64,000 bases of DNA from Bugula neritina (Eukaryota; Animalia; Bryozoa), in NCBI GenBank assembly GCA_964035545.1, contig OZ037769.1:930001-994000 (forward strand), given 5' to 3'. The position numbers and the translations under genes are program-made. This document shows positions 1,984-53,712 of this stretch, piece after piece. The first letter of the stretch is position 1; the number at the start of each line of letters is the position of its first letter. The notes beneath the pieces are model-generated. The model did not search any database and was not told where the DNA came from. It saw nothing but the letters and a program-made list of their open reading frames with translations.

Positions 1984-4900
1984 CTAAATATTTTCATAAG
2001 CTGATGATTCTACTTGCAGCTTTTCATATGTTGATGCAGGAGCTCCGTTGTCTTGTAACTTTTCATAAAGAGAGCTCTCATTGTTTACAGGGTTGCCATT
2101 GGTTACTGAGGTTGGCGTGTCCATTTCCTCATAGTTATGAGTAGCTGAGTTCACTCTGGGAGAGAGTTGAGTAGACATGGGTTCCTCATACACATCAGGT
2201 ACAGAAGATGGGTGGGTTGTACAGGGCAAACTATCTCTTTTCAAGTAGAGTATTATAATACTGATTGTAATCACAGCTACAGGTACTGCTATGATCAGAG
2301 CAATGAGACCTCCTGGAAACGAAATGTTCGCGTGGTAAATAGAATTGAAATTTTTGAATATATATATTCAATCACTAAACCCGAAACTTAAGTTAATGTT
2401 AAGTCTACATAAACATGTAATTCTGGATAAACACATCACTTGCTATATTCTGCAGACAACCACAGATCTCTAATGAGAGAGTATATATAAAATATTCTGT
2501 AAACAGCCACTGAACTCTAGTGAGAGAGTATGTAATATATTCTGTAAACAGCCACAGAACTCTAATGACAGAGTATGTAATATATTCTGTAGACAGCCAC
2601 TAAACTCTAATGAGAGAGTATATATAATATATTCTGTAGACAGCCACTAAACTCTAATGAGAGAGTATATATAATATATTCTGTAGACAACCACTGAACT
2701 CTAATGAGAGAGTATATAATATATTCTGTAGACAGCCACTAAACTCTAGTGACAGAGTATGTAATATATTCTGTAGACAACCACAGAACTCTAATGACAG
2801 AGTATATAATATATTCTGTAGACAGCCACTGATCTCTAATGACAGAGTATATAATATATATAATATATAGACAGCCACTGAACTCTAGTGAGAGAGTATA
2901 TAATATATAATAGAAGAAGCATAAACTCACCACTTAGTGGCACATTCTCTTCATCTCTGGTAGTAGAATGAGTCATATGCTCAGATACAACACAACCAGG
3001 GTCATGTGACCAGTTACCAGGCTCTGTACAGACAGGATTTGTAGTCTTAGTATAACCATCATCACATGAGTAGAGTAGATTATCTCCTCTGTAATATCTG
3101 TCTAGTGTGATGGTACCATTAGCTAGGGTTAGTGCTGCTGGGTCACACTCAGCTGTTAGGAAATGACAAAGCCTGTTGAGGTAATTTTACATATGAAAAC
3201 GTAACAACTCAGCTGTTATAAAATGATCTATATTATATATATAGAAAACACAACGTAAGCTGAATCAGAATGATGAAAAGACAAATGAGAAATTCAGTTG
3301 AGATAATTTTACATATGAAAACATAATAACAAGCTACATTATAGGAATATTCTATTATATGCTGATAATTGAAAGTCACAAATAATTACCTGTTTGTGTA
3401 CATTCTGGAACACTGGACCAAGTTTTATCACGTTGACACTGAATCGCATCCATGTTTGTTTTCTTGTAACCATAGTAACAGTCATATGATAGAACTTCTT
3501 GGTAGACATATGTGAGAGTTGCCTCTCCTTTAGATGTGATATTGGTAGTGGAAACATTGATGGAGAGATCAGTGATGTCACACTCAACTGAAGTTATTAT
3601 TAAAAAGCAAACTTGCAGATGGCAATGAAATAATGTGCAAAAGTAATTTAAGTTGTCATCATTAGAATTAAGTATATTAAATTTAAAGTATGTAGTTTTG
3701 GCTATAAAGATAGTATGCAATATAATTATATACAATGTCTACACTTTACAGTATATTGTAACTATATACATATACCTGGTGTACATGTTAGAGATATACT
3801 ACTCCATATCCATGATATATTATTATTATATACATATACCTGGTATACATGTTAGAGATATATTACTCCATATCCATGGTATATTATCTGTATCAGTAGA
3901 ACTACATCTAGATACAACTTCTTCTATTCCATTTCTACTCTCATATCCTTTTATACACTCATATACTGTTGTATGAGTATCAGTCTTAGTTTTATTAGTA
4001 AACTCAACATCTCTTGGCTCTTCTGTACAGTAGGGGACTGGAAAAAACATTTAGAGGTATTATATTAAGTTAATAAAGACATTTTATATATAATATTTTT
4101 ATTACACTGCTTTATAATATTGTGAATACATTATACCTGGAATACATCTTATCTCTGATTGGTTGACCCACTTAGCCTCTGTACCATCTACTTTACATTC
4201 AGAAGTTGAATTATACTTCAACTGATGGTCAGTATCTTCACAAGAGTAGTTTATTATTGTACCAGGAAACCAGGGAGATTCAGTAGATGGAGTACTTGTC
4301 ACATCATCTATTTCAGGTTTATCTCCACATGTCAGTACTGTAAAAGTAAAGAGAAAGGTAGCTGGCATATGGCAGACACAGGGAGAAAGTCTAATACATT
4401 TCTGAAAATACTTTTAATTGTAGTTCTCATAATCTAATTGTGACAGTGAATGCATTATAATGTAATTATGTATTGATGCTTATAAACTGATTTATGTGTT
4501 TATATGTTTTTTAAAAAGAAAATTTCCTATTGGTTTGATCAGTCTAATGGTTATATTTATTGCTCTAATTCTGTGCACTGCTCACTCACCTGTAAACTGA
4601 ATCATAAAGAATACAGACTCTACATCTCCATTGACAGAATCTCCCTCATTTTCATATCTCACAGAGAGTTGGTTGTTTGTAGAGGTTATGTTATGTAGAT
4701 ATCCATCTGGGAAGTTAGCAAACTCCTGATTATCAATAAACCAGGAAGTTCTGGATGATTCTGTAAGCTCAGTAATATCAAAGCTAACATAGTGAGTTTC
4801 ACTTGGTAGGTTTGATATTGTAAACTCACAGGATGATAATGACTGTTTATTAGTTGTATAAGAGCTGGTGAATATTCCAGTCAACTGTTCAACTTGAGGT

Positions 4901-5714
4901 CTGTCTGGTATCTGAAGATTTTCACCACAGAATGTCACTGTAAAAGACATAGCAAAACTTTACTTCAATGTGTAACATATTTTAAAGATATTTGCTCTAC
5001 AGTGTTGAGTGAACCTTATTAAATGGGTTGCTTCTCAATAAACACTGTATAACTGATTACTAACAACACAATAACATATCACAACTACTCATTCATACAG
5101 GCAAGTTAATCATTCAAACTATTTGTTAGCTGCAATATAGATATTAGTTTTCTGAACTTTGAAAAGATTTACAAGTTTTTTACATTAGAATTACTTATAT
5201 AGATTCAAAGTGCATCCCTTTACCTGTTGTAAAGAATTCCAAGTTGAATCCTGTCGTGTTGCTGAGAGTAGAAACTAATAATACAGACTGTTCTTGAGTG
5301 AACTTCTGTATTATACCAGGTCTTGTAGAGTCAATACAGTATGTTGTACCATCTACCTGTATCTCTGGACAGATAGCACCTTCTTCAGAAGCTGCCTTAA
5401 CTCCTGGTATACTGAGATAACTACCAGCAGGTGCTCTCAGAGTTAGACTACATCTAACAGGTGCTCCCTCTATCTCTCTATGTTCTATTATCCCTGCATA
5501 TCCTCTATCAACTGTCACTGTATTATTATCACATATATTCACTGGTTTAATATCTTGTCCTTCTATTAACATGACTGTGTAGATACTCAGCAGTATGAGT
5601 TGCAGAGGGAAGAACTAAAATATAATTAAATTAAATAATGAAAACTGTAGATTGTAAGATTATGTAATAGATATTATCTCATGCATGTGTTTGTATAAAT
5701 ATTCTACTCACCAT
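1984..5714 (-). CDS. Receptor paralog R4: SP-CUB-like x2-sushi x4-TM-Tyr-motif tail (type A tail), 629 aa
   Basis: Exons 5712-5714, 5224-5614, 4590-4937, 4137-4337, 3840-4037, 3390-3587, 2931-3152, 1984-2312, all GT-AG, total 1890 nt in frame; sushi C..C..GY..C..W..C patterns; TM GLIALIIAVPVAVITISIIILYL-KR; tail YEEP, YEEM, YEKL, YEKL, YENI. Confidence 0.88.
2440..2905. repeat. ~42-44 bp minisatellite in the last intron of R4
   Basis: About 10-11 copies of CTCTAATGAGAGAGTATATAATATATTCTGTAGACAGCCACTGAA; only ~2 copies in the paralogous R2 intron (13610-13690). Confidence 0.9.
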
Positions 5715-7202
5715 TTTTTGGACTGATTTAACCTCAGTTTCAATTCAAATATGGTTTCTAAGAAGTTACATTTACTATACATGTATCTGTATTGTACAAG
5801 ACATGCACTGTGTGCTGCAGTTAGTCTGTAACTACACTTATCAACTCAGCTAATGAATAAAAAGAGTTTATATTTTAACTTCCTCCTAGTACGTATTGTA
5901 TTATTCACTCAGCACTCTATGAGCACATTGAATATGATCATTAGATAAGCAAACATGTATATCTATAGATAGTAACCAACTTCCCTATTATGTACACTAT
6001 GTTGAGTATTCTATACTATATAATGCACTAGTTATATGAGGTTATTTATTTTTCTTAGTTATTTGAACAAAGAATTATTACCATGTATTGCTGTACAATC
6101 ACATTGAAAACTGATTACCACATCTAGTATTTAACTTTATACTCACAATCTTGCTCACTGTTAGCAGTTCAGTTTCCTGTAAGAAAACTCTTATCAATTT
6201 TGTTTTTCTTGTTGGGTGCAAATACAAATTCCAAAATCACAGAAGAAATATTTTGCTTTCAAAACCAAAATATGCTTCAATATTACATCAGCATACATCT
6301 AATGGTAATTCATAAGTATTTGGAGAATAAAATAGTTGAAAAAACTGAACGATACACACACTGTTGTCAGTTATTGTACAGCTAATCGTATATGATGCCA
6401 GTTCATTTACTGCAAAAAATTATGGCAATGCTTATAATACAGGGGTTGAGATGCGTAGCTATGGAGTTAATGTAAGAGATTAATATTCTGTGATAGATTG
6501 TAGTTATTGTAATATATAATCATGAGTTGTATTATAGCATTGTAGCTATACAAGCTTTTAGAGAAAAAGCTATGAAAAGCTTTCAGCTAAATAACTATAA
6601 TGCTTGATGTATATAATGTTTCCACTCTCTCTGACATACTATCCAACTAATTAACATACACACATTATACATACATATATTTATCATAGTTCCGCAGCTA
6701 CTATTGCAGGGTATCAATTGATATAGAAATTGTTTTTATAAATTTGGAAAGATTAAATATGATGGTTTAAACAGACTTTATAACTAGGTATATAATGCAC
6801 AATTACTGCAGTATAAAAGAAAAGAATAATTTTTAAAAACTGTCACAGTGCAAAATACAACATAATAATAAATTTGTTATTAAATTTCAGAGTATGTGTG
6901 CAAAAAAAATAAAACAGTGGTCAGTAAATGGTTTGTTCTGGCAAGTGATAAAATTCTAATATTCAGTAATGTGAGTTTTAGTAGTGCAAAAGATAAATAA
7001 TTCAAACTGAAATATAACTTTACAAAACTGAGTTGTGAAGACCAATTCACATGGTATCAGCAATAATTGGTAAAAGTATTAGACACTCAATACAAACATG
7101 TGAAAGTTTTCAGTTACAAAAGACGGTAGAATCAGAAATCAAGTTTGCGTGAGCAAGCAATTACCGTATAATACTGTGTTTACTGTAATATATATAGTAT
7201 AG

Positions 7203-10200
7203 TCAAATGACTGGTGATGTCATTTCCTGTCTGTTCTCATAAAGAGGAAGTGTTGTGTTCAGTTGAAGTTGTTCATATGCTGATGATGGAGAGGTGGTGA
7301 GCTGCTCGTAAGTGTTGGTGGGAGGATTTGCTGAGTTTGAGGGTTGAGTAGACATAGGTTCTTCATATACTTCATGTTTATCAGATAGGGTGTTTCTACA
7401 GGGCAGACTACTTCTTTTCAAATAGAGAATAATACTTCCCAGTGTGATCACTGCTAGTACCAGAACTACCACCACTCCAATCAAACCATCTAAATAAAAT
7501 CCATATAATTCATAAAATCAAAAACAAAACAAAGAAATTTTTTATCTAGGCTTCCCTAGGTAAGTAGAGTGGGAAACCCTGTTAAAGCTCTAACGCATGA
7601 GACAATAAAGAATATTCCGCAAAAAGTTTCAACCACCAAGTGACTAAAATCGATTAACTCTGATTATCTAAATTCTGATGAAACCCTCCACCATTATTGT
7701 AAATAGGTAAGGCTTTTTTGGCTGCAGTTTGATATTCTTGATTTGCTCCAATCATCTGTCAGTTTGATCTCCAGACTCAGTTTAACTGAGTTAGTAGGTG
7801 ACACTTCCTAACCAGTTGTTTAAATTATTGAGTACTTTTTTTGCATATATATAACTGAATAATGCAGGTCTAATGACAGTTTAATAGTATTACTTACCCC
7901 TTTGAGATTTAGGGTATAGTTGACTGTTTCCTGTGACATCAGTAGATTCACCATTTTTCACCAACAAGCAACAAGGGTCATGTGACCAGTTACCAGACTT
8001 TGTACAGACAGTATCTGTAGTCTTAGTATAACCATCATTACATGAGTAAAGTAGATTATCTCCTCTGTAATATCTGCCTGTCTGTATGTCTCCATTAGTT
8101 AGAGTTACTAATAAAGGGCTACACTCAGCTGTAAGAATAACCACATACATTGTATACTCCTCAAAGCTGTGTTACCATACAACTACAGTTTGATGAATTT
8201 ATATTATAGAAATTAGTCTAAATAATCTTACCAGTCTCAGTACATTCTGGAACACTGGACCAACTACCATCATGCTGACATTGGATAACACTCGGATTTG
8301 TTTTCTTGTAACCATAGTAACAATAATACTGTAGAACTTCTTGGTAGAAATATATGTGAATTGTTCCCCCTTTAGATGTTACATAAGTAGTAGTTGTGTC
8401 GAGAAACCAATCACCAATGTCACATTTCACTGAATAAAAAACACAAAAGATTTCTTGCATTAAGCATTGAAACATTATTCTATATTCATGCATGGTATAT
8501 TATTAATTACGCTATAATATATAATATTACTATATACATATATAAATATATACCTGGTGTACATGTTAGAGATATATTACTCCATATCCATGGTATATTA
8601 TCTGTATCAGTAGAACTACATCTAGATGCAACTTCTTCTATTCCATATCTACTCTCATATCCTTTTATACACTCATATACTGTTGTATGAGTATCAGTCT
8701 TAGTTTTATTAGTAAACTCAACATTTCTTGGTTCTGCTGTGCAGTAGGGGACTAGAAAATACAATTATAAGTATTATATTCATATATTATTAGAGAAAGT
8801 CTATATATAATCCTCATTATACAGGTTTATGATGTTATGAAGACGTACCTGGAATACATCTGATCTCTGATTGGTTGACCCACTTAGCCTCTGTACCATC
8901 TACTTTACATTCAGAAGTTGAGTTATACTTCAACTGATAGTCAGTATCTTCACAAGAATAGTTTATTATTGTACCAGGAAACCAGGGAGATTCAATAGAT
9001 GGAGTACTTGTCACATGATCTATTTCAGGTTTATCTCCGCATGCTAGAACTGCCAAAGAAAACAAAAGTAAGCTCATATGTGGTAGAAACAGGGAGAAAG
9101 TCTAAGATATTTCTGAAAATAGTTTTAATTGTAGTTTCACAATCTAATTTTAGCAGTGAATGCATTATAATATAATATAATAATTATGTTATAAACTCTT
9201 ATATGTATAAATTTCTCACTCACCTGTAAACGTAATCATAAAGAATACTGAGTCTACATCTCCAAATAGAGGATCTGGTTCTTGTTCATATCTCACAGAG
9301 AGTTGGTTGTTTGTAGAGGTTATGTCATGTAGATATCCACCAGAGAAGTTAGCAAACTCCTGATTATCAATAAACCAAGAGATTCTGGATGATTCTGTAA
9401 ACTCTGTAATCATATCAAATCTAACATAGTGAGCTTCACTTGATAGGTTTGATATTGTAAACTCACAGAATGATAATGACTGTTTATTAGTTGTATAAGA
9501 GCTGGTGAATATTCCAGTCAACTGTTCAACTTGAGGTCTGTCTGGTATCTGAATATCTTCACCACAGGATGTTACTGTAAAACCACAGCAAATGGCATAT
9601 AATATTTTACACAATACAAATAATTGTTATATTTTTGTAGATCTCTTTTCACAGCAATATTTTAGTAGAAAGTGAATTAAGAAAAATCCAGTCTCACAAC
9701 TCAGCTGATCATAGTAAACTTAAGATGACATGTCGTAAACACTTACTAAAGTTTAGTGGGGTAACCTTATTTATAAACTAATATACATGGAACCTGCTAA
9801 CAACATATATCTTAACTACTTGTTTGCACAGGCAAGCTGCAAAATGCTATCTCAAGATTATCACTAACCTCAATGCAATTGGAATACTATACTCTAGCTA
9901 TTGGTGTTTGAAATTTCTCTAAGATGAAGAGATACATTCACATATACAGGATATATTATGAATTCAGTAATTTTTACGTGGTAGTTTACCTGTTGTATAC
10001 AAGAGTATTATAGATATTTACCTGTTGTAAAGAACTCTAAATTAAATCCTGCCATGTTGCTGAGAGTAGAAGCTGAAAATACAGACTGTTCTTGAGTGAA
10101 CTTCTGTATTATACCAGGTTCTGTAAAATCAATACAGTATGTTGTACCATCTATCTGTATCTCTGGACAGATAGCACCTTCTTCAGCTGCCTTAACTCCT

Positions 10201-10561
10201 GGTACACTGATATAACTACCAGCAGGTGCTCTCAGAGTTAGACTACATGTAACAGGTGCTCCCTTTATCTCTCTATGTTCTATTATCCCTGCATATCCTC
10301 TATCAACTGTCACTGTATTATTATCACATATATTCACTGGTTTAATATCTTGTCCTTTTATCAATATGATAATATAACCACTCAGTAGCAGTAGGAGTTG
10401 TCTTCTGACTGACTGAAACAAAAACAGCTAATATTAGTATATATATACTCCTAAATTTTGTACAGTAAAGCTCAACCAAACTCTATGCATGGTCCCCTTT
10501 ATGCACTGCTGATCCTGCCAACTAATATTATTATAATATACATACACTGTGTACTTACCAT
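7203..10561 (-). CDS. Receptor paralog R3 (type B tail), 619 aa
   Basis: Exons 10559-10561, 10022-10412, 9224-9574, 8849-9049, 8554-8751, 8232-8429, 7898-8128, 7203-7489 (1860 nt); TM GLIGVVVVLVLAVITLGSIILYL-KR; tail YEEP, YEQL-x7-YEQL, YENR. Confidence 0.88.
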
Positions 10562-10999
10562 TGTATTGAAGGTACTCTGTAAGTAGATAGTTTATGTACA
10601 TCTATAAGTGTTGTATCTTATACACAGTATAGACTTATATATTCCCAATAATACTAGTCAGGGAGAAAAGTATAGTCTATTATCACAAGTCAAATACTTC
10701 AGTATATATACTTGTGATTTATATTTATACTTCCTTGTAGAAAGATAAATAATGTTATCACAATGAATGCTTTATCACAATGAATGTATTCATTTAAAAT
10801 ATTATAATATAAACCATTTGACTCTAATCATTCATTCTACTTATGCAAGTAGTTATCATAAAATGCATTATTAAAGCCTTATATACTTCACACATATAGG
10901 TATACTAGTAATGAATAACTACAATAAATTCTAATTAACTTTTTTAACAACACATATAATATATATTACTACTGTTTTATGATTACATACAGTATTCAG

Positions 11000-12500
11000 A
11001 GGAAGTAAAGAAGCAACTAGAGAAAATGAAGAATGGTAAGGCGGCTGGACCCGATGAACTCCCGATGGAGATAGTGAAGAAGCTTGGAGACCTTGGCCTT
11101 GACTGGATTACAGCGGTACTAAGGGAGGTGCAGGATGCAGGTGAACCAGAAGAATGGAGGAGAAGCAAAATAACACCAATTTACAAACAGAAAGGGGACC
11201 CCTTGGACTGCGGTAATTACAGAGGGATCAAACTGTTGAGCCACTGTCTCAAGCTATGGGAGAGGGTAGTGGAGAATAGGATTAGAGGCTTGGTAAAAAT
11301 ATCGGACAGGCAATATGGATTCCAACCCGGAAAGTCAACAGTACAACCAATGTTCTGCCTCGGGATGTTACAGGAGAAGATGAGAGAATATCAAACAGAC
11401 CTCCACATGGTATTCGTTGATCTTGAAAAAGCGTACGACACAGTGCCACGAGACCTCATATGGTACTGTTTAAAAAAAAAAGTGTACCAGAGCAGTATGT
11501 AAGGATTATCCGGGATATGTACAAGAACTGCACTACATCAGTTACAACCAGCGAAGGAGCAACAGAAGAGATAGACATCGAAGTGGGGTTGCACCAGGGA
11601 TCTGCGTTGATTCCTTTCCTGTTCATAGTCATATTGGATGTAATCTCAGAAAAAATAGACGAGAAAACACCGTGGGCAATGCTCTTTGCAGATGACCTAG
11701 TTATCTGCGATAAAGAGGAAGAAAGGGTAGAAAAGAGATTAGAGGCATGGCGTGGACATCTAGAGGACGCAGGTCTCAAGGTGAGCCGGAAGAAAACAGC
11801 GCATCTTCCACCAAGGGAAAGCACCACCAGGATCAGAATGAAAAGATACGACCAGGAGGACTACACTGAGCTACCAACAACAAATAAGTTCAAGTATCTG
11901 GGGACAGTGATAGATCAGGATGGAGGCTGTGAGGCTGAAGTCACAAGAAGAATAAGTGCAGCGTGGGATAGATGGAGGGACCTATCAGGAGTTATGTGTG
12001 ACAAAAAAGTGCCTAAACAACTAAAGGTAGTACTCTACAAAACAATCATAAAACCAACACTGATATATGGCAATGAAACATGGCCCATCACCCAGAGGCA
12101 AGAGCAAAGGATAGAGGCAACCGAAATGCGAATGCTCAGACACATATATAGAATAAACTGGGAGGATCATGTTAGGAATGAAGACATAAGAAGCGAAGCT
12201 AAGGTTAAACCTGTGTCTAGGTATATGAGGAAGAGAAGACTTCAGTGGTATGGTCATGTGCAGAGGAGAGATAGTGAAGAGGATATTAAATATGTGGCTG
12301 AGTTGAAAATAGTGGGGAAGAGAAAGAGAGGACGACCCAAACAAAGATGGATGGACACGGTAGGAGATGACATGAAGCGATGGGATCTTAAACCGGAGGA
12401 GGCAGAAGACCGGGAAAGATGGCAGACGCTGATAGAGATTGGAAACCTGCAGACCGGTCACCCGTACAGGACTACGACCGTATAGGTGTGAAAGGTGTGA
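11000..12500 (+). mobile_element. 5'-truncated RTE-clade LINE (reverse transcriptase, one frameshift)
   Basis: ORFs 11026-11502 and 11460-12485 with GNYRGIKLL, QYGF, FVDLEKAYD, GLHQG, LFADD, FKYLG, RRLQWYGHV and RGRP; frameshift in the A-run at ~11472-11481; ATTCAG target duplication at 10994-10999 and 12501-12506; GGTGTGA(AA) repeat tail; empty site visible at ~1255-1275. Confidence 0.95.
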
Positions 12501-13214
12501 ATTCAGTTAGTAATTTGGACAGGAAGTAAACAAGGTACCCAGAATGCACTGCAACAGAACAACTGAGTAAGAGAAATCTCCGAGAGTTTCTAATATATTT
12601 AAACATACTATGTTGTGTTACTAGAAGTTACTTCAGCTTGTTAACAATGGATAATAAACAGCTAGATGTTTGTTTAAGTATAACTCATAGTATAGATGAG
12701 AGAGTATTATATTGTTTACAAAGTATATATTACATGAATAAGGGTAATAAATATAATATGTCTATATTAAACAGTTAGATGACCAATAATATAAATAGAA
12801 TATATATCAATGCAGGAACACTTAGTGTATAAATTTACTAATAACATTATAATATAATGGTAAATGATATATAGAGCAGTAAGAGTTTCTGTAAAGTATG
12901 CTATCTATCATGTAACTTAGACATCACCCTAAATGAAGAAGCAGAAGACCCTTTAATGATTTCCAGTAATTTATAGCTTTAAGTTACTTGCAGCTGTGAC
13001 CTAGAAATAGCTCAGGGAATGCTTTACAAATCAAAACAGCAAGTTGTAAAAATTTATTGCAGTTATAGAATTATACTCATAGAAATGCTAAGAGAAAAAA
13101 TATTGTTTGCTAAAGAGTAAACAAAATTGTGTTCAATTATAATTAAATATTTTTGTTTAAAATTGCTGTGAATAAAGATGTCAGGCACTATCTTGTCTGC
13201 ATGTATTTTACATG

Positions 13215-16200
13215 CTAAATATTTTCATAAGCTGATGATTCTACTTGCAGCTTTTCATATGTTGGTGCAGGAGCTCCGTTGTTTTGTAACTTTTCATAAA
13301 GAGAGCTCTCATTGTTTACAGAGTTGCCATTGGTTACTGAGGTAGACGTGTCCATTTCCTCATAGTTATGAGTAGCTGAGTTCACTCTCGAAGAGAGTTG
13401 GGTAGACATGGGTTCCTCGTACACATCAGGTACAAAAGGTGGGTGGGTTGTACAGGGCAAGCTATCTCTTTTCAAGTAGAGTATTATAATACTGATTGTA
13501 ATTACAGCTACAGGTACTGCTATGATCAGAGCAATGAGACCTCCTGGAAAGAAGTTAATGTTAAGTCTACGTAAACATGTGTAAATTCAACAGATTTATA
13601 TTCACAGTGGACAGCCACTGAACTCTGGTGAGAGAGTATGTAATATATTCTGTAGACAGCCACTATAAACTCTAATGAGAGAGTATATATAGATAAATTA
13701 AAAAAACAAGAACTCACCATTGAGTGGCACATTCTCTTCATATCTGGTAGTAGAATGAGTTATATTCTCAGATACAACACAACCAGGGTCATGTGACCAG
13801 TTACCAGACTCTGTGCAGACAGGATCTGTAGTCTTAGTATAACCATCATCACATGAATAGAGTAGATTATCTCCTCCAAAATATCTGTCTAGTGTGATGG
13901 TACCATTAGCTAGGGTTAGTGCTGCTGGGTCACACTCAGCTGTTAGAAAATATGTTATATATTTAGAAAAGACGACACAAGTTGAATCGGAATGATGAAA
14001 AGACAAATGACAAAGTCTGTTGAGGTTATTTACATATGACAACATAATAATAAGCTAAATTATAGAAATATTCTATTACATGCTAATTATTGAAAGTCAC
14101 AAACAATAACCTGTTAGTGTACATTCTGGAATACTGGACCAAGTTTTATCATGTTGACACTGAATCACATCCATGTTTGTTTTCTTGTAACCATAGTAAC
14201 AGTCATATGATAGAGCTTCTTGGTAGACATATGTGTGAGTTGTCCTTCCTTTAGATGTGATGTTAGTAGTGGAAACATTGATGGAGAGATCAATGATGTC
14301 ACACTCAACTAAAGTTATTAATAAAGGGTTATACTAGCAGATATCAATGAGCAGTTTATTCAAATTAAGAGAGGTTATACTTGTTACTATTATAATTTAG
14401 TATATTAAAATAAGATTATAGCAGCTATAAAGATAGCATGAATATAACAAGTATACAGCATTTACAGTATATTATTACTATGTCCTACATATACCTGGTG
14501 TACATGTTAGAGATATATTACTCCATATCCATGGTATATTATCTGTATCAGTAGAACTACATCTAGATACAACTTCTTCTATTCCATCTCTACTCTCATA
14601 TCCTTTTATACACTCGTATACTGTTGTATGAGTACCAGTCTTAGTTTTATTAGTAAACTCAACATCTCTCGGCTCTTCTGTACAGTAGGGAACTAGAAAA
14701 TGCGATTAGAAGTATGATTTTTAATTATTAGAAAAAGTTCATATATAATCTTTCATATATAGCGTTATGTGTTGGAGACATACCTGGAATACATCTGATC
14801 TCTGATTGGTTGATCCACTTAGCCTCTGTACCATCTACTTTACATTCAGAAGTTGAGTTATATTTCAACTGATAGTCAGTATCTTCACAAGAATAGTTTA
14901 TTATTGTACCAGGAAACCAGGGAGATTCAGTAGATGGAGTACTTGTCAAATGATCTATTTCAGGTTTATCTCCACATGTCAGTACTGTAAAAGTAAAGAG
15001 AAAGGTAGCTGGCATATGGCAGACACAGGGAGAAAGTCTAAGACATTTCTGAAAAAACTTTTAATTGCAGTTTTCATAATCTAATTTTGGCAGTGAACGA
15101 ATTATAACGTAAGTATGTATTGATGCTTATAAACTCATTTACGTGTTCATATGTTTTTTAAAAAGAAAATTTCCTGTTGTTTTGATCAGTCTAATGATTA
15201 TATTTAATGATCTAATTTTGTGCATCTCTCACTCACCGGTAAACTGAATCATAAAGAATACTTCATCTACATCTCCAGATACAGGATCTCCCTCATTTTC
15301 ATATCTCACAGAGAGTTGGTTGTTTGTAGAGGTTATGTCATGTAGATATTCATTAGGGAAGTTAGCAAACTCCTGATTATCAATAAACCAGGAGGTTCTG
15401 GATGATTCTCTAATCTCAGTAATAATATCAAACGTAACATAGTGAGCTTCACTTGGTAGGTTTGATATTGTAAACTCACAGGATGATAATGAATATTTAA
15501 TAGTTGTATAAGAGCTGGTGAATATTCCAGTCAACTGTTCAACTTGAGGTCTGTCTGGTATCTGAATATCTTCATCACAAGATATTACTGTAATGATAAT
15601 CAACAGAGTAAAACAAATTATTTTGCAAATTTCAATTATTTAATTGTACCGAATTTTTATAGATTTTGTTGATTAATTTATCACCTATAGTTTTATAATG
15701 AATAGGCTGAAATTGAAACCAATAATAACGTTTCAAGTTAATTTCTTCACACCGTTGGGAACTTTTAAGCCATCCATTAGACTGTGCAGTGCAGCAGCTA
15801 ACAATAGCATGCAATGAATGTTAGCTACAATTAGTATAAGTTTTATAGTAGCGGTAAAGTCAAAGCCACCTGAAAATTTTATTTTCAGCCGATCAGAAAT
15901 CCCAAATCATTTCAGTACATACTTGCACAAAATTCTTTATAAAACAAAATTGTATAGGCATTCAACCTTAAAACATTATGTAGATGAAAACTAATATATA
16001 TAAGAAAATTTTAGTACTGCATAAGTGAAGTGTGCCAGGAATTCTTTAAAAAATAAATAATAAATAGGCCAATATATAGACCAATCTATTTTTATTTGTA
16101 AAGTGCTAAATCTTCACTCAAAATAAATAGTGTAGTAGTTTTGTGGGTAGAATGAAATTTAGTGGGGAGCCTAACTTCAGTATAGAAGAAACAAGGTGAA

Positions 16201-17128
16201 GTGGTAATCTTGAATGAAATAATCTTTATTGCAGTAAAAGTAGTGTATAAAATTAGGTCTGTACCCTGCGAGCTCCATGCAGTGATAGACAATGCTAAAA
16301 ATTGGGCTTTCCGGCAGAGGTTGGCCTACATAATTCAAACAATTACCACAAAGAAACTATTCCCTATGCTAAAAGCTTTATCAATAACTACAATATTTAT
16401 AAGGCATTAGAAAGCTACCCATAGCTTAGCTATAATTGGAGGCATTCCAAAGTTACGCCAAGAGCTTAGTTATAATTACAGCATTCAAAAAGATAAGCAA
16501 TAAGTAATTATAATGCTGAAGCACATAGTTACTAAAACTTTCCAAAACATAGTAGTGACAACTCTCAAAATCCATTACAATAGTTTACAGTTGAAACTTT
16601 TTAATAGACGAGAGTAATACATGGTTACCTGTTGTAAAGAACTCCAGGTTAAATCCAGACATGTTGCTGAGAGTAGAAACTGATAATACAGACTGTTCTT
16701 GAATGAACTTCTGTATTATACCAGGTCTTGTAGAGTCAATACAGTATATTAATGTACCATCTATCTGTATCTCTATCTGTATCTCTGGACAGATAGCACC
16801 TTCAGGAGCTGCATAAACTCCTTGTATACTAATATAACTACCAGCAGGTGCTCTCAGAGTTAGACTACATCTAACAGGTGCTCCCTCTATCTCTCTATGT
16901 TCTATTATCCCTGCATATCCTCCATCAACTGTCACTGTATTATTATCGCATATATTCACTGGTTTAATATCTTGTCCTTTTATCAATATGACTGTGTAGA
17001 TACTCAGTAGTAGGAGTTGCAGAGGGAAGAACTAAAATAATTATATTAAATAATAAAAACTGTAGATTGTAAGATTATATATTTATAGATACTATCTCAT
17101 GTGTTTGTATATAAGTTTTACTCACCAT
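13215..17128 (-). CDS. Receptor paralog R2 (type A tail), 634 aa
   Basis: Exons 17126-17128, 16629-17031, 15237-15587, 14784-14984, 14495-14692, 14111-14308, 13718-13939, 13215-13543 (1905 nt, open frame). Confidence 0.88.
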
Positions 17129-18622
17129 TCTTAGACTGATTTAATCCCAATTTCAATTCAAATATGGTTTCTAAGAAGTTACATTTACCCTACATGTATC
17201 TGTATATTGTACAAGACGTGCACTGTGTGCTGCAGCTAGTCTGTAACTAAACTATCAACTTAGCTAATGATTAGAAGGAGTTTATATTTTAACTTCCTCA
17301 TAGTACCTATAATGTGTTATTTACTCAGCACCCTATGAGCACATTGAATATGATCATTAGATAAGCAAACATGTATATCTATAGATAATAACCAACTTCC
17401 CTATTATATACACTATGTTGAGTATTCTATACTATATAATGCACTAGTTATATGAGGTTATCTATTTTCCTTAGTCATTTGAACAAAGAACTATTACCAT
17501 GTATTGCTGTACAATCACAGTGAAAACTGATTACCACATCTAGTATCTATCGTTATACTCACAATCTTGCTCACTGTTAGCAGTTCAGTTTCCTGCAAGA
17601 AACTTCTCTTATCAATTTTGTTTTTCTTGTTGGGTGCAAATACAGATTTCAAAATCACAGAAGAAATATTTTGCTTTCAGAACCAAATGCTTCAATAGTA
17701 TATCAACATACATTTAATGCTAATTCATACGTATTTTGAAAATACAATACTTGAGAAAACTGAACAATACACACACTGTTGTCAGTTATTGTACAGCTGA
17801 TCATATGATACCAGTTCATTTTCTGCGAAGAATAAAGGCAATGCTTATAATGCAGGTGTTGAAATGTGTAGCTATGCATGAAGTTAATGTAAGATATTAA
17901 TACTCTGTTATAGATTGTAGTTAAATTGTAATATAATCATGTGTTGTATCATAGCATTGTAGCTATACAAGCTTTTAGAGAAAAAGCTATGAAAAGCTTT
18001 CAGCTAAATAACTAATGCTTGATGTATATAATGTTTCCACTCTCTCTGACATACTACCTACTAGTTAACATACACATATTATGTATATATTTATTATAGT
18101 TCGGCAGCTACTATTGCAGAGTATCAATTGATATAGAAATTGTTTTTATAAATTTGTTATGATAAATGATGATGGTTTAAACAGACTTTATAATTAGGTA
18201 TATAATGCACAATTACTGAAGTATAAAAGAAAAGAATAATTTTTAAAAACTTATATCCACTATTACAGTTCGAAATACAATTACATACTAATAAATTTGT
18301 TATTAAATTTCAGAGTATGTGTGCAAAAAATAAAAAAGCAGTCAATAAAATTGTTTGTTGTGGCAAATGATAAAATTCTAATATTCAGTTATGTGAGTTT
18401 CAGTAATGTAAAAACATAAATAATTCACACTGAAAGATAACTTTACAAAACTGAGTTGTGAAGACCGATTCACATAGTATCAGAAAATTGGTAAAGGTAT
18501 TAGACACTGAATACAAACGTGTAAAAGTTTTCAGTTGAAAAAAGCAGTAAAATCAGAAATAAAGTGTGCATGAGCAAGCAATTATATTACTGCATGTGTT
18601 TACTGTAATGTGTGTAGTATAG

Positions 18623-21486
18623 TCAAATGACTGGTGATGTCATTTCCTGTCTGTTCTCATAAAGAGGAAGTGTTGTGTTCAGTTGAAGTTGTTCATATGC
18701 TGATGATGGAGAGGTGGTGAGCTGCTCGTAAGTGTTGGTGGGAGGATTTGCTGAGTTTGAGGGTCGAGTAGACATAGGTTCTTCATATACTTCATGTTTA
18801 TCAGATGGGGTGTCTCTACAGGGCAGACAACTTCTTTTCAAGTAGAGAATAATACTACCCAGTGTAACCACTGCTAGTACCAGAACTACCACCACTCCAA
18901 TCAAACCATCTAAAACATGTCATGTGATTTGTAAAGCAGAATGTAATATAAAAGAAAGAGCAAATGATTGACAATAAGTAGAGTGGATAAACCTATAAAA
19001 TCCGTGAAACATAAGACAATAGAAAATATTCTACAAAAATAGTTGAACAAAATATACTCAAATTGATTGGCTCTAACTATCTAAATTCTGGTAAATCCCT
19101 CCACTATTATTCTAAATATCAACATAAGGCTGATCAGCTGAAAGTTAAATGTCTTGATTTGACCCAAACAGCTGTCAGCTTCAACTCAGTTAGTAACTGA
19201 CAATGTCTATAAACTGTTTCCATCTATATACAACTTTAAACAGCATCACTTACCTCTTTGTGACTGGAGGGCTAGATAGCTGTTTCTGGTGGCTTCAGTA
19301 GATTTACCATCTTTGACCAACAGACAACCAGGGTCATGTGACCAGTTACCAGACTCTGTACAGACAGGATCTGTAGTCTTAGTATAACCAATATCACATG
19401 AGTAGAGTAGATTATCTCCTCCGTAATATCTGCCTGTCTGTATGTCTCCGTTAGTTAGATTTAGTGCTGTAGGGTCACACTCATCTGTAAGAATAACCAC
19501 ATATATGTATTGTATACTTTTCAAAGCTGTGTTACCATACAACTACAGTTTGATAAATGTATATTATAGACATGAGTCTAAATAATCTTACCAGTCTCAG
19601 TACATTCTGGAACACTGGACCAACTACCATCATACTGACATTGAATAACACTCGGATTTGTTTTCTTGTAACCATAGTAACAATAATACTGTAGAACTTC
19701 TTGGTAGAAATATGTGTGAGTTATTCCTCCTTTAGACGTCACATAAGTAGTTGTTGTGTCGAGAAACAAATCACTAATGTCACATTCCACTGAATAAAAA
19801 ACACAAGAGATTTCTTGTAACATTGAAACATTATCCTATATTCATGGTATATTATTACGCTATACTATATATTATTACTATAACATATATAAATATATAC
19901 CTATTGTACATGTTATAAGAGATAGTATATTATTACTATATACAAGTACCTGGTGTACATGTTAGAAATATATTACTCCATATCCATGGTATATTATCTG
20001 TATCAGTAGAATTACATCTAGATACAACTTCTTCTACTCCATCTCTACTCTCATATCCTTTTATACACTCATATACTGTTGTATGAGTATCAGTCTTGGT
20101 TTTATTAGTAAACTCAACATCTCTTGGCTCTTCTGTACAGTAGGGGACTAGAAAATACAACTAGAAAAATTCTATTCAGGTATTAGATGACGTCTATATA
20201 ATATGGCACTTATAATGCAAGCTTGTGCTATAAATATATACCTGGAATACATCTGATCTCTGATTGCTTGACCCACTTAGCCTCTGTATCATCTACTTTA
20301 CATTCAGAAGTTGAGTTATATTTCAACTGATAGTCAGTATCTTCACAAGAATAGTTTATTATTGTTCCAGGAAACCAGGGAGATTCAGTAGATGGAGTAC
20401 TTGTCACATGATCTATTTCAGGTTTATCTCCACATGTCAGAACTGTAACAAGAGTGACTACATTGTTCAAACCTATACTATTTAAAATATAATGTTAACC
20501 ATTGTGTCGAAATTGAATTATTTACTCACCTGTAAACTGAATCATAAAGAATACTGAATCTACATCATCAGATACAGGATCTGGCTCATTTTCATATTTC
20601 ACAGAGAGTTGGTTGTTTGTAGAGGTTATGTTATGTAGATATCCATCAGGGAAGTTAGCAAACTCCTGATTATCAATAAACCAGGAGGTTCTGGATGATT
20701 CTGTTATAAGCTCAGTAATATCAAACCTAACATAGTGAGCTTCACTTGGTAGGTTTGATATTGTAAACTCACATGATGGTAATGACTGTTTATTAGTTGT
20801 ATAAGAGCTGGTGAATATTCCAGTCAACTGTTCAACTTGAGGTCTGTCTGGTATCTGAATATCTTCACCACAGGATGTCACTGTAACATAAATGTATACA
20901 ATAATTACATGTCGTCTATAGCACAAAAGTTAGGCTTGTTACATAGGTTATCTTTAGCTTCACCTGTTTTATATAAGAATAACATTTATACCTGTTGTAA
21001 AGAATTCCAAGTTGAACCATGTCACATTGCTGAGAGTAGAAACTGATAATACAGACTGTTCTTGAGTGAGCTCCTGTATAATACCTTCAGGTCTTGTAGA
21101 GTCAATACAGTATGTTGTACTATCTATATGTACTTCCGCGCAAAAGTATCCTTCAAAATATTTATAATGAACTCCTGGTATACTGATATAACTACCAGCA
21201 GGTGCTCTCAGAGTTAGACTACATAAAACAGGTGCTCCCTTTATCTCTCTATGTTCTATTATCCCTGCATATCCTCTATCAACTGTCACTGTATTATTAT
21301 CACATATATTCACTGGTTTAATATCTTGTCCTTCTATGAATATGACTGTGTATATACTCAGCAGTATGAGTTGCAGAGGGAAGAACTGAAATATAATTAA
21401 ATTAAATTAAATAATGAAAACTGTAGATTGCAAATTTATATACTAGATACTATCTCATGTGTGTGTAAATAAGTTTTACTCACCAT
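18623..21486 (-). CDS. Receptor paralog R1 (type B tail), 620 aa; first gene of the array
   Basis: Exons 21484-21486, 20992-21385, 20530-20880, 20242-20442, 19950-20147, 19592-19789, 19254-19484, 18623-18909 (1863 nt, open frame). Confidence 0.88.
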
Positions 21487-22402: not shown

Positions 22403-39715
<17,313 letters not shown>

Positions 39716-41044: not shown

Positions 41045-44000
41045 TTAACCAGTCCGTGACCTTCTATGCATCAGATGAGGGTCAAGGACAAAGTTGAGCT
41101 GCAAGTTTTGATTGGCTGAGAAGCTAATCAAGAGGTTTTTAAGCCCTGTTTCTATTTGAGGTTGAAATTTTCTAGGAACGTACCCATCTCGGTAAGACCT
41201 AGCAATGGTGACTAAAGCTATATCTGGTAAAGCTGATATAGAACCTTCTGTCAGAAGTAAGTCCTTGGTAATGCTGCCTTCACTTGGGACATAGAATACA
41301 GATCCTCCAGAATAGGGTGTGCTGGAGCCTGTACACACGGCCATAGAGTTTAGCTGAGTCTCTACAGATATCTTAGCTGTGTAGGGGGACAACTCCATAC
41401 AGAAACCAACAGCTAACAACGCTTTCAGTTGAGGAATTGACAGTTTTTCTCTCACATAAAATTTAAGTTGGTCCAACTTCTCTTTGATTCTGTTTACTTG
41501 AGAGCATTTTGTCTGACTCATAGCAGTGGTCTGCTCTTGGGTCAAGGTTAGGCAGTTGATGTCCAGTGGAGATGTACACTTAGACTGCAGGACACTTGTT
41601 ATCAAATCAAACAAATGTTTCTCCTCATCTGCTGTTCTGGGACAGAAAAGTGGTTCCAGCATCTCATTTACCTTCTCTGAAAACACATTAGTATATTATG
41701 AATCATACTCTGTGATATTTTACTGCAACAATTGTCTTCTTTTACAGACAAGCTATGCTACAAGGATACAAATTGTAAGCTCAACATGCAAAATGCTGGA
41801 AAGGCTCATCAAACACTACATTATAACTCATACACCTATGGACAAATATCAGTTCGCATATCGTACAAATCGCTCTACACAAGATGCGCTGTTATGTCTA
41901 ACTACAACTGTGACAAGTTTCATTGATAAGAAAGCATCCAATTACGCAAGGTGCCTTTTTCTAGACTTCTCTTCTGCATTCAATACTATATCTATTCCAG
42001 ACCTCATTACGCAACTAACTCATCTTGACTCCAATGTTACTGAGTGGATTTACAGATTTCTTACAAACAGAGTGGATGGCATAACATCAAATCCAATCAT
42101 AACTAACACAGGAACTCCCCAAGGGTGCTGTTTATCTCCACTATTGTTTTCTATCTACACTAATAGGATTACCTCAAGCCAGAGCAACATCACCGTAATT
42201 AAATATGCAGATGACACTTGCATTATTGGCTGCATTGGCAAACAGTCTGATCTAAATATTTACTTTGATGAGATTAAAAGAATTTCTAAGCAATGTGATG
42301 ATTTAAATTTATTATTAAACCCTAGCAAGACCCAAGAAATGATGTTCTCAACCCAACGTGCTAAACCTCATACCCCTACTCTCGTATTGAATGGAACAAA
42401 CATTGTATTGTCTGAAAAAGTAAGATATCTTGGTGTGTTAGTGGATCAGAATTTGAGATTTCATGAACATGTACAATCAGTAGTAACAACAGTATCAAGA
42501 AGAATGTATATTGTGAAGAATTTTGCGTATCTTAGCTCTAAACCTCTAGCAAATATGTTATTCAAAAGTTTCATCATGTCCCGCATCGCCTATTGTCTAC
42601 CTACTATTTTTACTTGTATCTATGCCAGTGATAAAAAGGCTATTCGAAGAATTCTCAAAGATTGCTCAAAACTCGGAATTAAGTATCTAAACATTGATTT
42701 GCACATTCAGAAACTCACTAAAGAACTTGCCATCAAATATATAATAGACAATGACCATTTCATCAATAACTTTCTGAGTCAATGCCCTTCTGGAAGATAT
42801 CGAACCATCAAATATAGAGGGGCATGAGGCAGAGATAGCTTCTTGCGACATTTTGTAAATACTTTGAATGATCTTTTATTTCAAATAATCCAACAGAGTT
42901 TTGATTTTTTCTCTTATTTTTGTTCATTCCTACTTATTATAGCCAGTATTTACACTGAATTTTGCAACGTGCTGTCATGTTTGTGATATGTAATAAATCA
43001 ATCAATCAACAGTTCTTGCTTAAAGTATATTTAGAGAAAGGCAAACTGTGTAGTGGTATGAAGATAGAGTGATGTAATATATTGTGACAATCAATAATTT
43101 CATTCTTATTGTATTTACGCTAACAGGAAACACGCATATCAGCATGCTATTTAAATGTTAACATAATATTGTAATGGATTCTCATCCTCTACTGTTCTGA
43201 AGTAACTGCGTGCGTCAGTATTATAATTACTGTTGCGTATGTTTGGAATGCTGTAATTGTAGCTAAGTTGGGCTAGCTTTCTAATGCCTTATTATTGTGA
43301 TTGTTGTTAAAGCTTTTAGTATAATGTAATTTTCATGAAATACGCATTCCAGAGTTATTTTCTCTTTTTGCTATTTGTGTGGCTTTTATGAATGCCTTCA
43401 ATAGGTTGTTATTATAGCTAAATTCTTGGCCTATTGAATTATTCGTTCTCCTTTGTCTACTTTTCTTTTGTTTCTGTCAAGCTTAACTTTTTTTTGTCTG
43501 TTGGAACATTCTAGATTGTGAATTCTTGTGTATAAAAGCAGGCGAGTTTCCAGTGTAGTTCAGACTACTACTGGAGCTCGCTGGTAGTAGGACCTAAAGC
43601 TGTATTGATACAATAAAAGTTATCTTTCATTTGTACTCAAATACTTGGCTTATTCTTTCTAATGAGCATGTAGGCACTAGTTGCATTCATAACCCACAGT
43701 TTACTACAATATTAAAGTTTTAAAGCCAGCTGAAGCCCTTGCTATGTGACCATACCGCAACAACAAACTTATTTTCTCACAAGTAGGCTGTGTGTTTTTC
43801 TCAACTGCTTCTTTTAAGGAGAAATATGTAACCGTATTCACGCTCAAAAGAAAATCTAATACAAAACTAAATCTGCATCTTGGAACTTAAATACACCAAT
43901 AATGCAGCTCTGTTCTAATAAATAATACGTAGATCTGAGAACTGGTGATTAGCTTCATTTGAACAAGACTTTTCAACTAATACAAGATAGCTACATGTTT

Positions 44001-48410: not shown

Positions 48411-52564
<4,154 letters not shown>

Positions 52565-53712
52565 GGAGACATTCATGTTTAGCCTGAGTACCTAATTGAC
52601 GTATCCAGGGTGTCTCTAAACCACACCCCTATTCATTCAACTCTTCAAATTTGTATACTGGTTTTATATACAGTAATATCTAAATACGATTACAATGTTT
52701 AATTTCTGTTTATTATGTTTATAAAACTTGTTTTTCATTTTTCTGAGTTGTCTTTTCAAGTTGCTCATGGGAATACTAAAAATAAAATGTCTTAAAACTA
52801 CTAAGAATTTGCTCCTACAAATATATATAATACAAATAAGTTGTCCTAGTCGGCAATTTCAACTTGGAAAATAGCAACTTGTGTGGGGACAAGTTGAAAC
52901 TAGTGTATATTACAAGGCAGTTTCATCAAGTTTGTGTGTATTGCATTTGAGTTGTACAATTTATTATACCGTTACCATATTGAATAATACTGTAGGTATC
53001 ACTTTTATGGGCATTTCTTAGCTATTAAACTCGAAGTTGCAAAATTAATAAAATCTGCTGAGGTCAATAAACCAGACCTTGACTATATTTTCAAACAAAA
53101 GAAAAAAATGTACAAGAATAAAATTCCTCAAGAAAAAAAATTTAGCATCAAAAAGTAAACACTGCAAAAATATGTACTATAAATTTTGCAGCTACGTCAG
53201 AATGCTATATTCCCATATCCATATCCCTTCTATTTAACACAACATATGCTTCGGGTAAAATACCAGAAACCAATCGATACAGGTTCTGGACCTTCTATGC
53301 AGTGCAGAACCTTAGCCTAGCATTCTAAAGCTGATAGTATGAGAGAATCATTATGCCCAAAGGGTTAAACTGTAATTTAGACTCAAAGATTTCACCACCA
53401 TTGAAATACTAGTCTATTGGCAACATAATTGAGCGAATTCATTGCTAAAATGAGTGAGCATGCTTCATCCTGTCTCCCTGAGTAAAGGAGACGTGGAGAC
53501 GTACTCTACTGTTCAAAGTTATGTGAAGACAACTCTAATGTAATATTCAAATGCTACGGGTCAGCTATGATATTGAAAACTCAATTTATATGAACGGATG
53601 CATAATGCAAATTAGGAAATGTAAAAAGATCAAAGTGACATCAATTCCTTCAATAGTATACCAAGAGGTAGCACGTGTAGAGAGATAACCTATACAAATA
53701 TTTGGCACTGTA

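Follow-up and report, generated by a model that had tools for sequence, protein, structure and literature searches.

Tandem CUB-sushi receptor-like genes with discrete tyrosine-motif tails in the bryozoan Bugula neritina

The 64,000-nucleotide stretch analyzed here (the window; C5:930001-994000 of a 216-Mb Bugula neritina assembly, GenBank GCA_964035545.1, contig OZ037769.1) carries, on the minus strand of its first 21.3 kb, four complete genes, R1 to R4, and the first large exon of a fifth gene. In each R1-R4 protein a signal peptide is followed by two CUB or CUB-like domains, four sushi (CCP) domains and a stalk, then by a single membrane span and a cytoplasmic tail of 53-83 residues; the tails are of two types, A (R2 and R4) and B (R1 and R3). 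We suggest, giving this reading an even chance, that the genes encode recognition receptors with a common head and interchangeable phosphotyrosine-docking tails, similar in their chemistry, which resembles the immunoreceptor tyrosine-based activation motif (ITAM), and that the order of the tail types was set by block duplication.

The exons for the transmembrane (TM) segment and tail lie on the minus strand at 18623-18909 in R1, 13215-13543 in R2, 7203-7489 in R3 and 1984-2312 in R4, and their translations agree exactly with the motifs of types A and B given in a preliminary description of the window. Type B reads YEEP, YEQL-x7-YEQL and YENR, the tyrosine codons of R1 being at 18785-18787 (YEEP), 18728-18730 (NTYEQL), 18695-18697 (SAYEQL) and 18659-18661 (PLYENR). 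Type A reads YEEP, YEEM and SLYEKL-x9-YEKL-x6-YENI-stop, with the tyrosine codons of R2 at 13419-13421 (YEEP), 13362-13364 (YEEM), 13296-13298 (SLYEKL), 13257-13259 (PTYEKL) and 13227-13229 (SAYENI); the fourth tyrosine stands in STYEKL in R4 only. The first two tyrosines, Y1 and Y2, are common to both types and stand at identical residues of the tail exon, 41 and 60: Y1 as (V/D)YEEP, a YxxP-type site, and Y2 as the Src-SH2-like YEx(L/M/V/I). Each type has its own distal repeats of a YE(Q/K)L unit, and these give canonical ITAM spacing in A (YEKL-x6-YENI, beside a wider x9 pair) as well as in B (YEQL-x7-YEQL), at places that are not homologous. The ITAM pattern (x6-8) was found in just 0.2-0.4% of shuffled tails, and all tyrosines were followed by glutamate in 0 of 20,000 shuffles. 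The A and B tails are plausible disordered phosphotyrosine docking modules.

The consensus of the immunoreceptor tyrosine-based inhibition motif (ITIM) is matched in type A, as the preliminary description had pointed out, by SLYEKL and SAYENI (and by STYEKL in R4); SAYEQL of type B fits it too, and the ITIM pattern occurs in 12-18% of shuffled tails, which is chance level. A YxN site is present in both types (YENR in B, YENI in A), and YEEM in A. Because A and B both carry an ITAM-spaced pair, an ITIM match and YxN, the motifs do not separate an activating from an inhibitory type, and the split between such roles that had been entertained for the two tails is unreadable from sequence; if anything, both types look like receptors with an ITAM in the tail. 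No charged residue was found in the TM segment of A, B, a third tail type B' or the short-tail members of the family, and an activating partner of the classical kind was rejected on this ground.

In type B', the match to B ends with the YE of the second tyrosine; unrelated sequence follows and leads to an early stop, and B' genes have no sushi-3 exon. A hidden B tail in B' was rejected, since nothing B-like follows that YE and the B' stop is kept in other individuals. Further tail classes were found in a second gene cluster at C5:677-717 kb, whose divergent tails end in a common VYVTNVTVG motif: the tail at C5:680 kb (NIYEDI and VYVTNV) carries Y2 only, and that at C5:686 kb (DYEEP, HIYEEV and VYVTNV) carries Y1 and Y2. 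Y2 as YEx(L/M/V/I) was found in all five tail classes, and Y1/Y2 persist across classes that have just 37-46% identity. Several outlying family members have short tails without a tyrosine motif.

The genes are mosaics. Exons 1-4 have a nucleotide identity of 0.89-0.96 both within and between tail types; in exon 7, the tail exon, the identity is 0.955 between A tails, 0.974 between B tails and 0.59 between A and B. The outer half of the protein (CUB1, CUB2, CCP1 and CCP2) is homogenized across types, except for a hypervariable loop in CUB1, and CCP3, part of CCP4, the stalk, the TM segment and the tail come as discrete cassettes A, B and B'. The co-segregation of TM segment, stalk, sushi 3 and the N-terminal part of sushi 4 with the tail type, noted in the preliminary description, was confirmed in the window, where each of the two sushi-3 variants tracks one tail type; the intron upstream of the tail exon and the 3' flank track it as well. 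Three other genes (g912, g716 and g709) combine the 'A' sushi 3 with a B tail, so that the co-segregation is real locally, but has been broken elsewhere by recombination.

The B-A-B-A order of R1-R4 had been taken as a sign of pairing. It holds for these four genes, but the window carries only the upstream end of an 11-gene minus-strand array (C5:897-951 kb), in which the tails run, from the upstream end, B-A-B-A-B-A-B'-B-A-B'-B, so that the alternation breaks after six genes and includes the third type. An alternating arrangement, moreover, makes up two of the six possible orders of two A and two B genes, that is, one third by chance. The spacers between the genes form classes that agree with the types of the genes on either side (B>A, A>B, A>B' and B'>B): the B>A class has five members that can be aligned from end to end, with 85-92% identity, the two A>B spacers align mutually, the two A>B' spacers are 91.5% identical and the two B'>B spacers 92.9% identical. 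This agreement shows that the array grew by copying of a B-A block and, further along, of a B-A-B' block; the tail alternation is therefore inherited and was rejected as independent evidence of pairing. The A>B spacer between R2 and R3 measures 2.8 kb, not 1.3 kb, because a reverse-transcriptase fragment resembling a long interspersed nuclear element (11026-12485, plus strand; Pfam RVT_1, 1e-12) has been inserted in it.

A genome search with exon 2 gave 23 matches, 22 of them on C5, which puts no fewer than 22 genes of the family on a single chromosome. The whole-genome search with both tails detected 14 A/B-like tail exons, 11 of which lie inside the C5:897-951 kb array, and A or B tails matched no other family in the genome. 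The second cluster comprises eight family genes on the plus strand, and a third one comprises three family genes on the minus strand (C5:588000-613400) with a distinct TM/tail cassette; exon 2 of one copy in this trio is interrupted by two in-frame TAA codons.

The open reading frame (ORF) list and the exon map show each of R1-R4 as seven large, stop-free coding exons. R1 (g948_B), the first gene of the array, spans 18623-21313, its definition resting on the ORFs, the exon map, Pfam Sushi matches on CCP3 and CCP4 and the CUB fold of exon 2; its exons upstream of the tail exon encode the CUB1-like domain (20972-21313), CUB2 (20525-20884), CCP1 (20231-20470), CCP2 (19939-20160), CCP3 (19581-19823) and CCP4 with the stalk (19249-19542). 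R2 (g943_A) spans 13215-16986, R3 (g937_B) 7203-10414 and R4 (g932_A) 1984-5572, all three complete; the CUB1-like exon of the type B gene g927_B lies at 243-653, also on the minus strand, and the remainder of this gene precedes the window start. A further short exon at the 5' end, carrying the start codon, exists in R1-R4: exon 1 has a splice acceptor directly before its signal-peptide-like stretch, and contigs end loosely at 16983 in R2; the position of this 5' exon was not located.

Domain, profile and structure searches were made exon by exon. The Pfam Sushi family (PF00084) was matched by CCP3 (3.4e-8) and CCP4 (1.3e-5); CCP1 and CCP2 had no Pfam match and are assigned from their four-cysteine/Trp pattern. 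A Bugula gene model, P0020, contains three Sushi stretches. Exon 1, exon 2 and the two tails gave no Pfam family, and the CUB family PF00431 was not matched by exon 2. Exons 1 and 2 have about 110-125 codons each. The structure model of exon 2, built from 28 family sequences, reached a mean predicted local distance difference test score (pLDDT) of 87.7 and matched solved CUB domains, with spermadhesin first (E 8e-6), followed by MASP-2, C1r, PCPE-1 and TSG-6, at template-modeling scores of 0.5-0.6; exon 2 is a CUB domain by its predicted fold. The exon 1 model was poor (pLDDT 61), and we call this exon 'CUB-like' from its sequence pattern. Its residues 43-60, the CUB1 loop, appear hypervariable, with a proportion of non-synonymous differences (pN) of 0.26-0.33 and a ratio to synonymous differences (pN/pS) of 1.2-1.7. 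The pooled ratio of non-synonymous to synonymous divergence (dN/dS) was 0.7 for exon 1, 0.85 for exon 2 and 0.33 for exon 3.

The family is transcribed. RNA contigs from four runs, one from each of four studies, map to the exons and show GT..AG joints; they were placed at 93% likeness or more, so that expression is given per tail type, not per gene. Spliced contigs confirm the introns of R2, with CT..AC joints (GT..AG on the minus strand) at 13939/14111, 14308/14495, 14692/14784 and 15587/16629, and one 849-nt contig joins exons 1-4. Both types of tail exon have contig coverage, at 13296-13544 for A and at 18571-18872 for B, and the contigs of run X1 include both tail types.

The genome also encodes candidate signaling partners. 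SH2 domains gave 46 exon matches. A Syk-like candidate locus (C7:14.371-14.378 Mb) combines two SH2 exons with kinase exons, all on one strand, and the best solved matches of its kinase exon are SYK (1e-27) and then ZAP-70, one chain deposited as EGF receptor aside. An SHP-like candidate locus (C3:23.740-23.749 Mb) has SH2 exons at C3:23740128-23744618, followed on the same strand by protein tyrosine phosphatase exons at 23747667 and 23748275. Candidate Src-like SH2 proteins are encoded as well. The same assembly contains dense tandem series of tyrosine-phosphatase exons at C6:8.02-8.43 Mb and C1:3.96-4.23 Mb. Uninterrupted kinase or phosphatase domains were also seen on many small unplaced contigs, among them C10:262-966, C33:18549-19265, C66, C176:33222-33977 and C201:57526-58122; they have 5-18 in-frame TAA/TAG codons and hardly any TGA. 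This is the pattern of a ciliate-type code, and the assembly therefore probably holds DNA of an associated ciliate.

The phosphorylation, the partners, the ligand and the cell type of R1-R4 are what we infer. Clustering driven by a ligand would lead to phosphorylation of the tails by a Src-type kinase, and the phosphorylated tails would recruit a Syk-like kinase with tandem SH2 domains together with adaptors of the PI3K or Grb2 type. Types A, B and B' would differ in the strength or the branch of the output, not in its sign. The B-A-B-A order itself is a side effect of block duplication, of two genes here and of three genes farther along the array.

The tail exons are islands of conservation, with 95-97% identity against 63-85% in the adjoining intron and 3' flank. 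Y1 and Y2 hold the same positions in A and B despite saturated synonymous divergence between the two types (dN/dS 0.34). Searches with the tails returned no more than five short ORFs from metagenomes; these stem from other individuals (pS 0.02-0.13), retain all ITAM, ITIM, YxN, YxxM and YEEP motifs and keep the B' stop and C-terminus. The preliminary description held that every tyrosine motif is conserved within a type; this is so in the window, at 95-97% nucleotide identity, but outside it the copy at C5:709 kb has one Y changed to C and the copy at 927 kb reads YDQL.

Several results weigh against docking tails kept for their motifs. Between B tails dS is 0.02 and dN 0.027 (dN/dS about 1.3, on very few changes), and conservation within a type is largely a matter of concerted evolution; with dS at just 0.02, we rejected it as evidence of selection. 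Compared with the metagenome copies, tail pN is about equal to pS. With these ORFs added, the motif columns (Y, +1 and +3) varied in 3 of 36 cases and the other tail columns in 39 of 169 (Fisher p = 0.066), and the Y columns alone vary like other columns. In the A-B alignment, where overall identity is 38%, three of the four B tyrosines fall on a tyrosine, no significant excess. The ITAM spacing itself could stem from duplication of the 11-13-residue YE(Q/K)L unit, and all motifs apart from YEEP and YENR also match the endocytic signal YxxPhi. Finally, the sole full-length distant homologue, Watersipora subatra XP_067929890.1, has two PPPY in its tail and no YE motif.

Three other explanations were weighed against this background. 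If the proteins were true paired receptors, they would bind a common ligand by their outer domains and send opposite signals, activating by Syk and inhibitory by an SHP-type phosphatase, to be integrated by the cell. Discrete, cassette-like membrane-proximal and tail parts on near-identical receptors (CUB1 to CCP2), the physical interleaving of A and B genes, the presence of both tail types among the contigs of one run and of Syk-like and SHP-like genes in one genome agree with this proposal, and to this extent the preliminary suggestion of paired signaling receptors stands; type A has two or three ITIM matches and YEEM, and type B has the cleanest ITAM. The motifs that would discriminate between the two signals are, however, present in both types, and the ITIM matches are of the frequency expected by chance. 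Tandem ITIMs are usually about 25-30 residues apart, whereas the ITIM-like sites of A are separated by 10-13 residues, which is ITAM spacing. Neither a charged TM residue nor the classical short-tail activating partner is present, and the interleaving is accounted for by block duplication in an array that also has B' genes and B-B neighbors. We consider opposite signaling quite improbable. The tails might instead be those of endocytic or scavenger receptors, with YEQL, YEKL, YENI and YEEM acting mainly as AP-2 sorting signals for cargo bound by the CUB and sushi domains rather than as SH2 docking sites. Cargo-binding and endocytic proteins often have CUB and CCP ectodomains, every distal motif matches YxxPhi, and the PPxY motifs of the Watersipora tail are typical of endocytosis driven by ubiquitin ligases. 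Four or five YE tyrosines with ITAM spacing at two non-homologous places nevertheless exceed the needs of a sorting signal, YEEP and YENR do not match YxxPhi, and tandem expansion with a hypervariable CUB1 loop suits recognition receptors better; we regard sorting as the main role of the tails as possible, but doubtful.

It may also be that the genes encode proteins of the adhesion or matrix type whose tails have no function at the level of the motifs, the YE motifs being remnants of internal duplication and the types neutral variants fixed by duplication and gene conversion. The near-equality of pN and pS within types, the internal repeats of the YE(Q/K)L unit, the tyrosine lost at C5:709 kb and the family members with short, motif-free tails would all fit. 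Neutral tails are harder to reconcile with tail exons far better conserved than their flanks, with Y1 and Y2 persisting across classes at 37-46% identity, with the A-B dN/dS of 0.34 and with the B' stop and C-terminus kept in other individuals, and this account appears rather unlikely to us. We retain recognition receptors with a common head and exchangeable ITAM-like tails as the most probable interpretation.

The family appears to be undescribed, and it has so far been seen only in bryozoans. A literature search found no published description of it, and a sequence word search with the Bugula model P0020 found nothing. The exon 2 profile, run against 1.84 billion representative proteins, gave 17 matches, two of them named and both of these bryozoan: the Watersipora subatra protein, which has the R1-R4 architecture but three sushi domains, and a truncated Bugula neritina model annotated 'CR2', 82% identical to the C5:677 kb gene. 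The architecture and the expansion are bryozoan-specific.

Vertebrate paired-receptor families form clusters of genes with Ig or C-type lectin domains, and their activating partners have short tails and a charged TM residue. R1-R4 resemble KIR, LILR, Ly49, SIRP and CD200R in the tandem cluster, the near-identical ligand-binding domains, the differing TM/tail modules and the tyrosine motifs; they are nevertheless non-homologous, with CUB and CCP instead of Ig or C-type lectin domains, and the bryozoan family has no short-tail charged-TM partner and, both long tails being ITAM-spaced, no clear inhibitory member. An ITAM in the receptor's own tail is known from Drosophila Draper, which signals with Shark, and from FcgammaRIIA and CEACAM3. 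R1-R4 likewise have the YxxL/I pairs in the receptor itself, not in an adaptor, with unrelated ectodomains; an ITAM protein of haemocytes of the ascidian Halocynthia is a further example (PMC5465252).

The order of CUB and then CCP modules is also that of C1r/C1s/MASP, CSMD and SEZ6, and exon 2 folds, in its model, like the CUB domains of MASP and C1r. CDCP1 is a membrane protein with CUB domains whose tail tyrosines are Src substrates. Unlike the CUB-CCP proteins and CDCP1, R1-R4 have no EGF or protease domain, their CUBs are too divergent for Pfam, and their tails are unrelated.

Two families of colonial invertebrates come closest among the analogues described so far, and neither is related to R1-R4 in sequence or architecture. 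The fester co-receptors (FcoR) of Botryllus schlosseri form a large clustered family of type I proteins with one sushi domain, whose tails contain ITIM, hemITAM and other YxxI/L/V motifs; their modules are swapped among members, and copy number changes by gene pairs (PMC12582321). FcoR proteins are Ig-sushi-Ig-Ig without CUB, have the motifs xAYAIV and DDVYAIL and belong to another phylum, whereas R1-R4 are CUB-CCP proteins. Homology to FcoR or fester was rejected on the architecture, and the named matches of the exon 2 profile are bryozoan only. The Alr genes of Hydractinia are a tandem family in the allorecognition complex, and ITAM-like and ITIM-like tail motifs have been discussed for them (PMC9546547, bioRxiv 10.1101/2022.03.25.485889); their ectodomains belong to the Ig superfamily and are cnidarian-specific, unlike the bryozoan CUB-CCP family.

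Elsewhere in the window, a papain-family cysteine protease (cathepsin) gene lies at 50000-52600 on the plus strand (last exon, Peptidase_C1 5.6e-18), and two retroelement reverse-transcriptase ORFs lie at 38123-39193 and 41526-42827, also on the plus strand (RVT_1, 2.4e-4 and 2.1e-30). Some 25 repeats of a 57-nt unit form a long minisatellite at 32340-33767; it can be read through in either strand as a reiterated peptide of 19 residues and probably does not encode a protein. Spurious ORFs arise from long simple repeats, (TA)n-like and (CA)n-like, at 31600-31900 and 35380-35770.

Larval kin recognition was reported for Bugula neritina (Keough 1984, cited in PMC10078279); later studies of other populations did not reproduce it. 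It is an unlikely proposal that the C5 clusters form a complex for self/non-self, kin or pathogen recognition, in which a diversifying CUB1 loop would read a polymorphic ligand, exchange of the cassette from sushi 3 to the tail would connect one recognition head to three signaling outputs (A, B and B'), and the balance of these outputs would set the response of the cell. If true, the complex would be a convergent counterpart of the logic of natural killer (NK) cells and of Botryllus FcoR, and it could offer a molecular handle on larval kin recognition in this species.

Bryozoans are colonial animals, and to our knowledge the phylum still lacks a described receptor for immunity or allorecognition. 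The family presented here is a concrete candidate: large, transcribed, tandemly expanded, with a locally hypervariable head and interchangeable tyrosine-motif tails. With the A and B tail peptides and the Syk-like and SHP-like genes now located, binding tests can be designed. Should the tails signal, ITAM-type wiring would have arisen independently once more, here on a CUB-CCP rather than an Ig scaffold; should they not, the tails would be instructive look-alikes of such motifs that arose from unit and block duplication.

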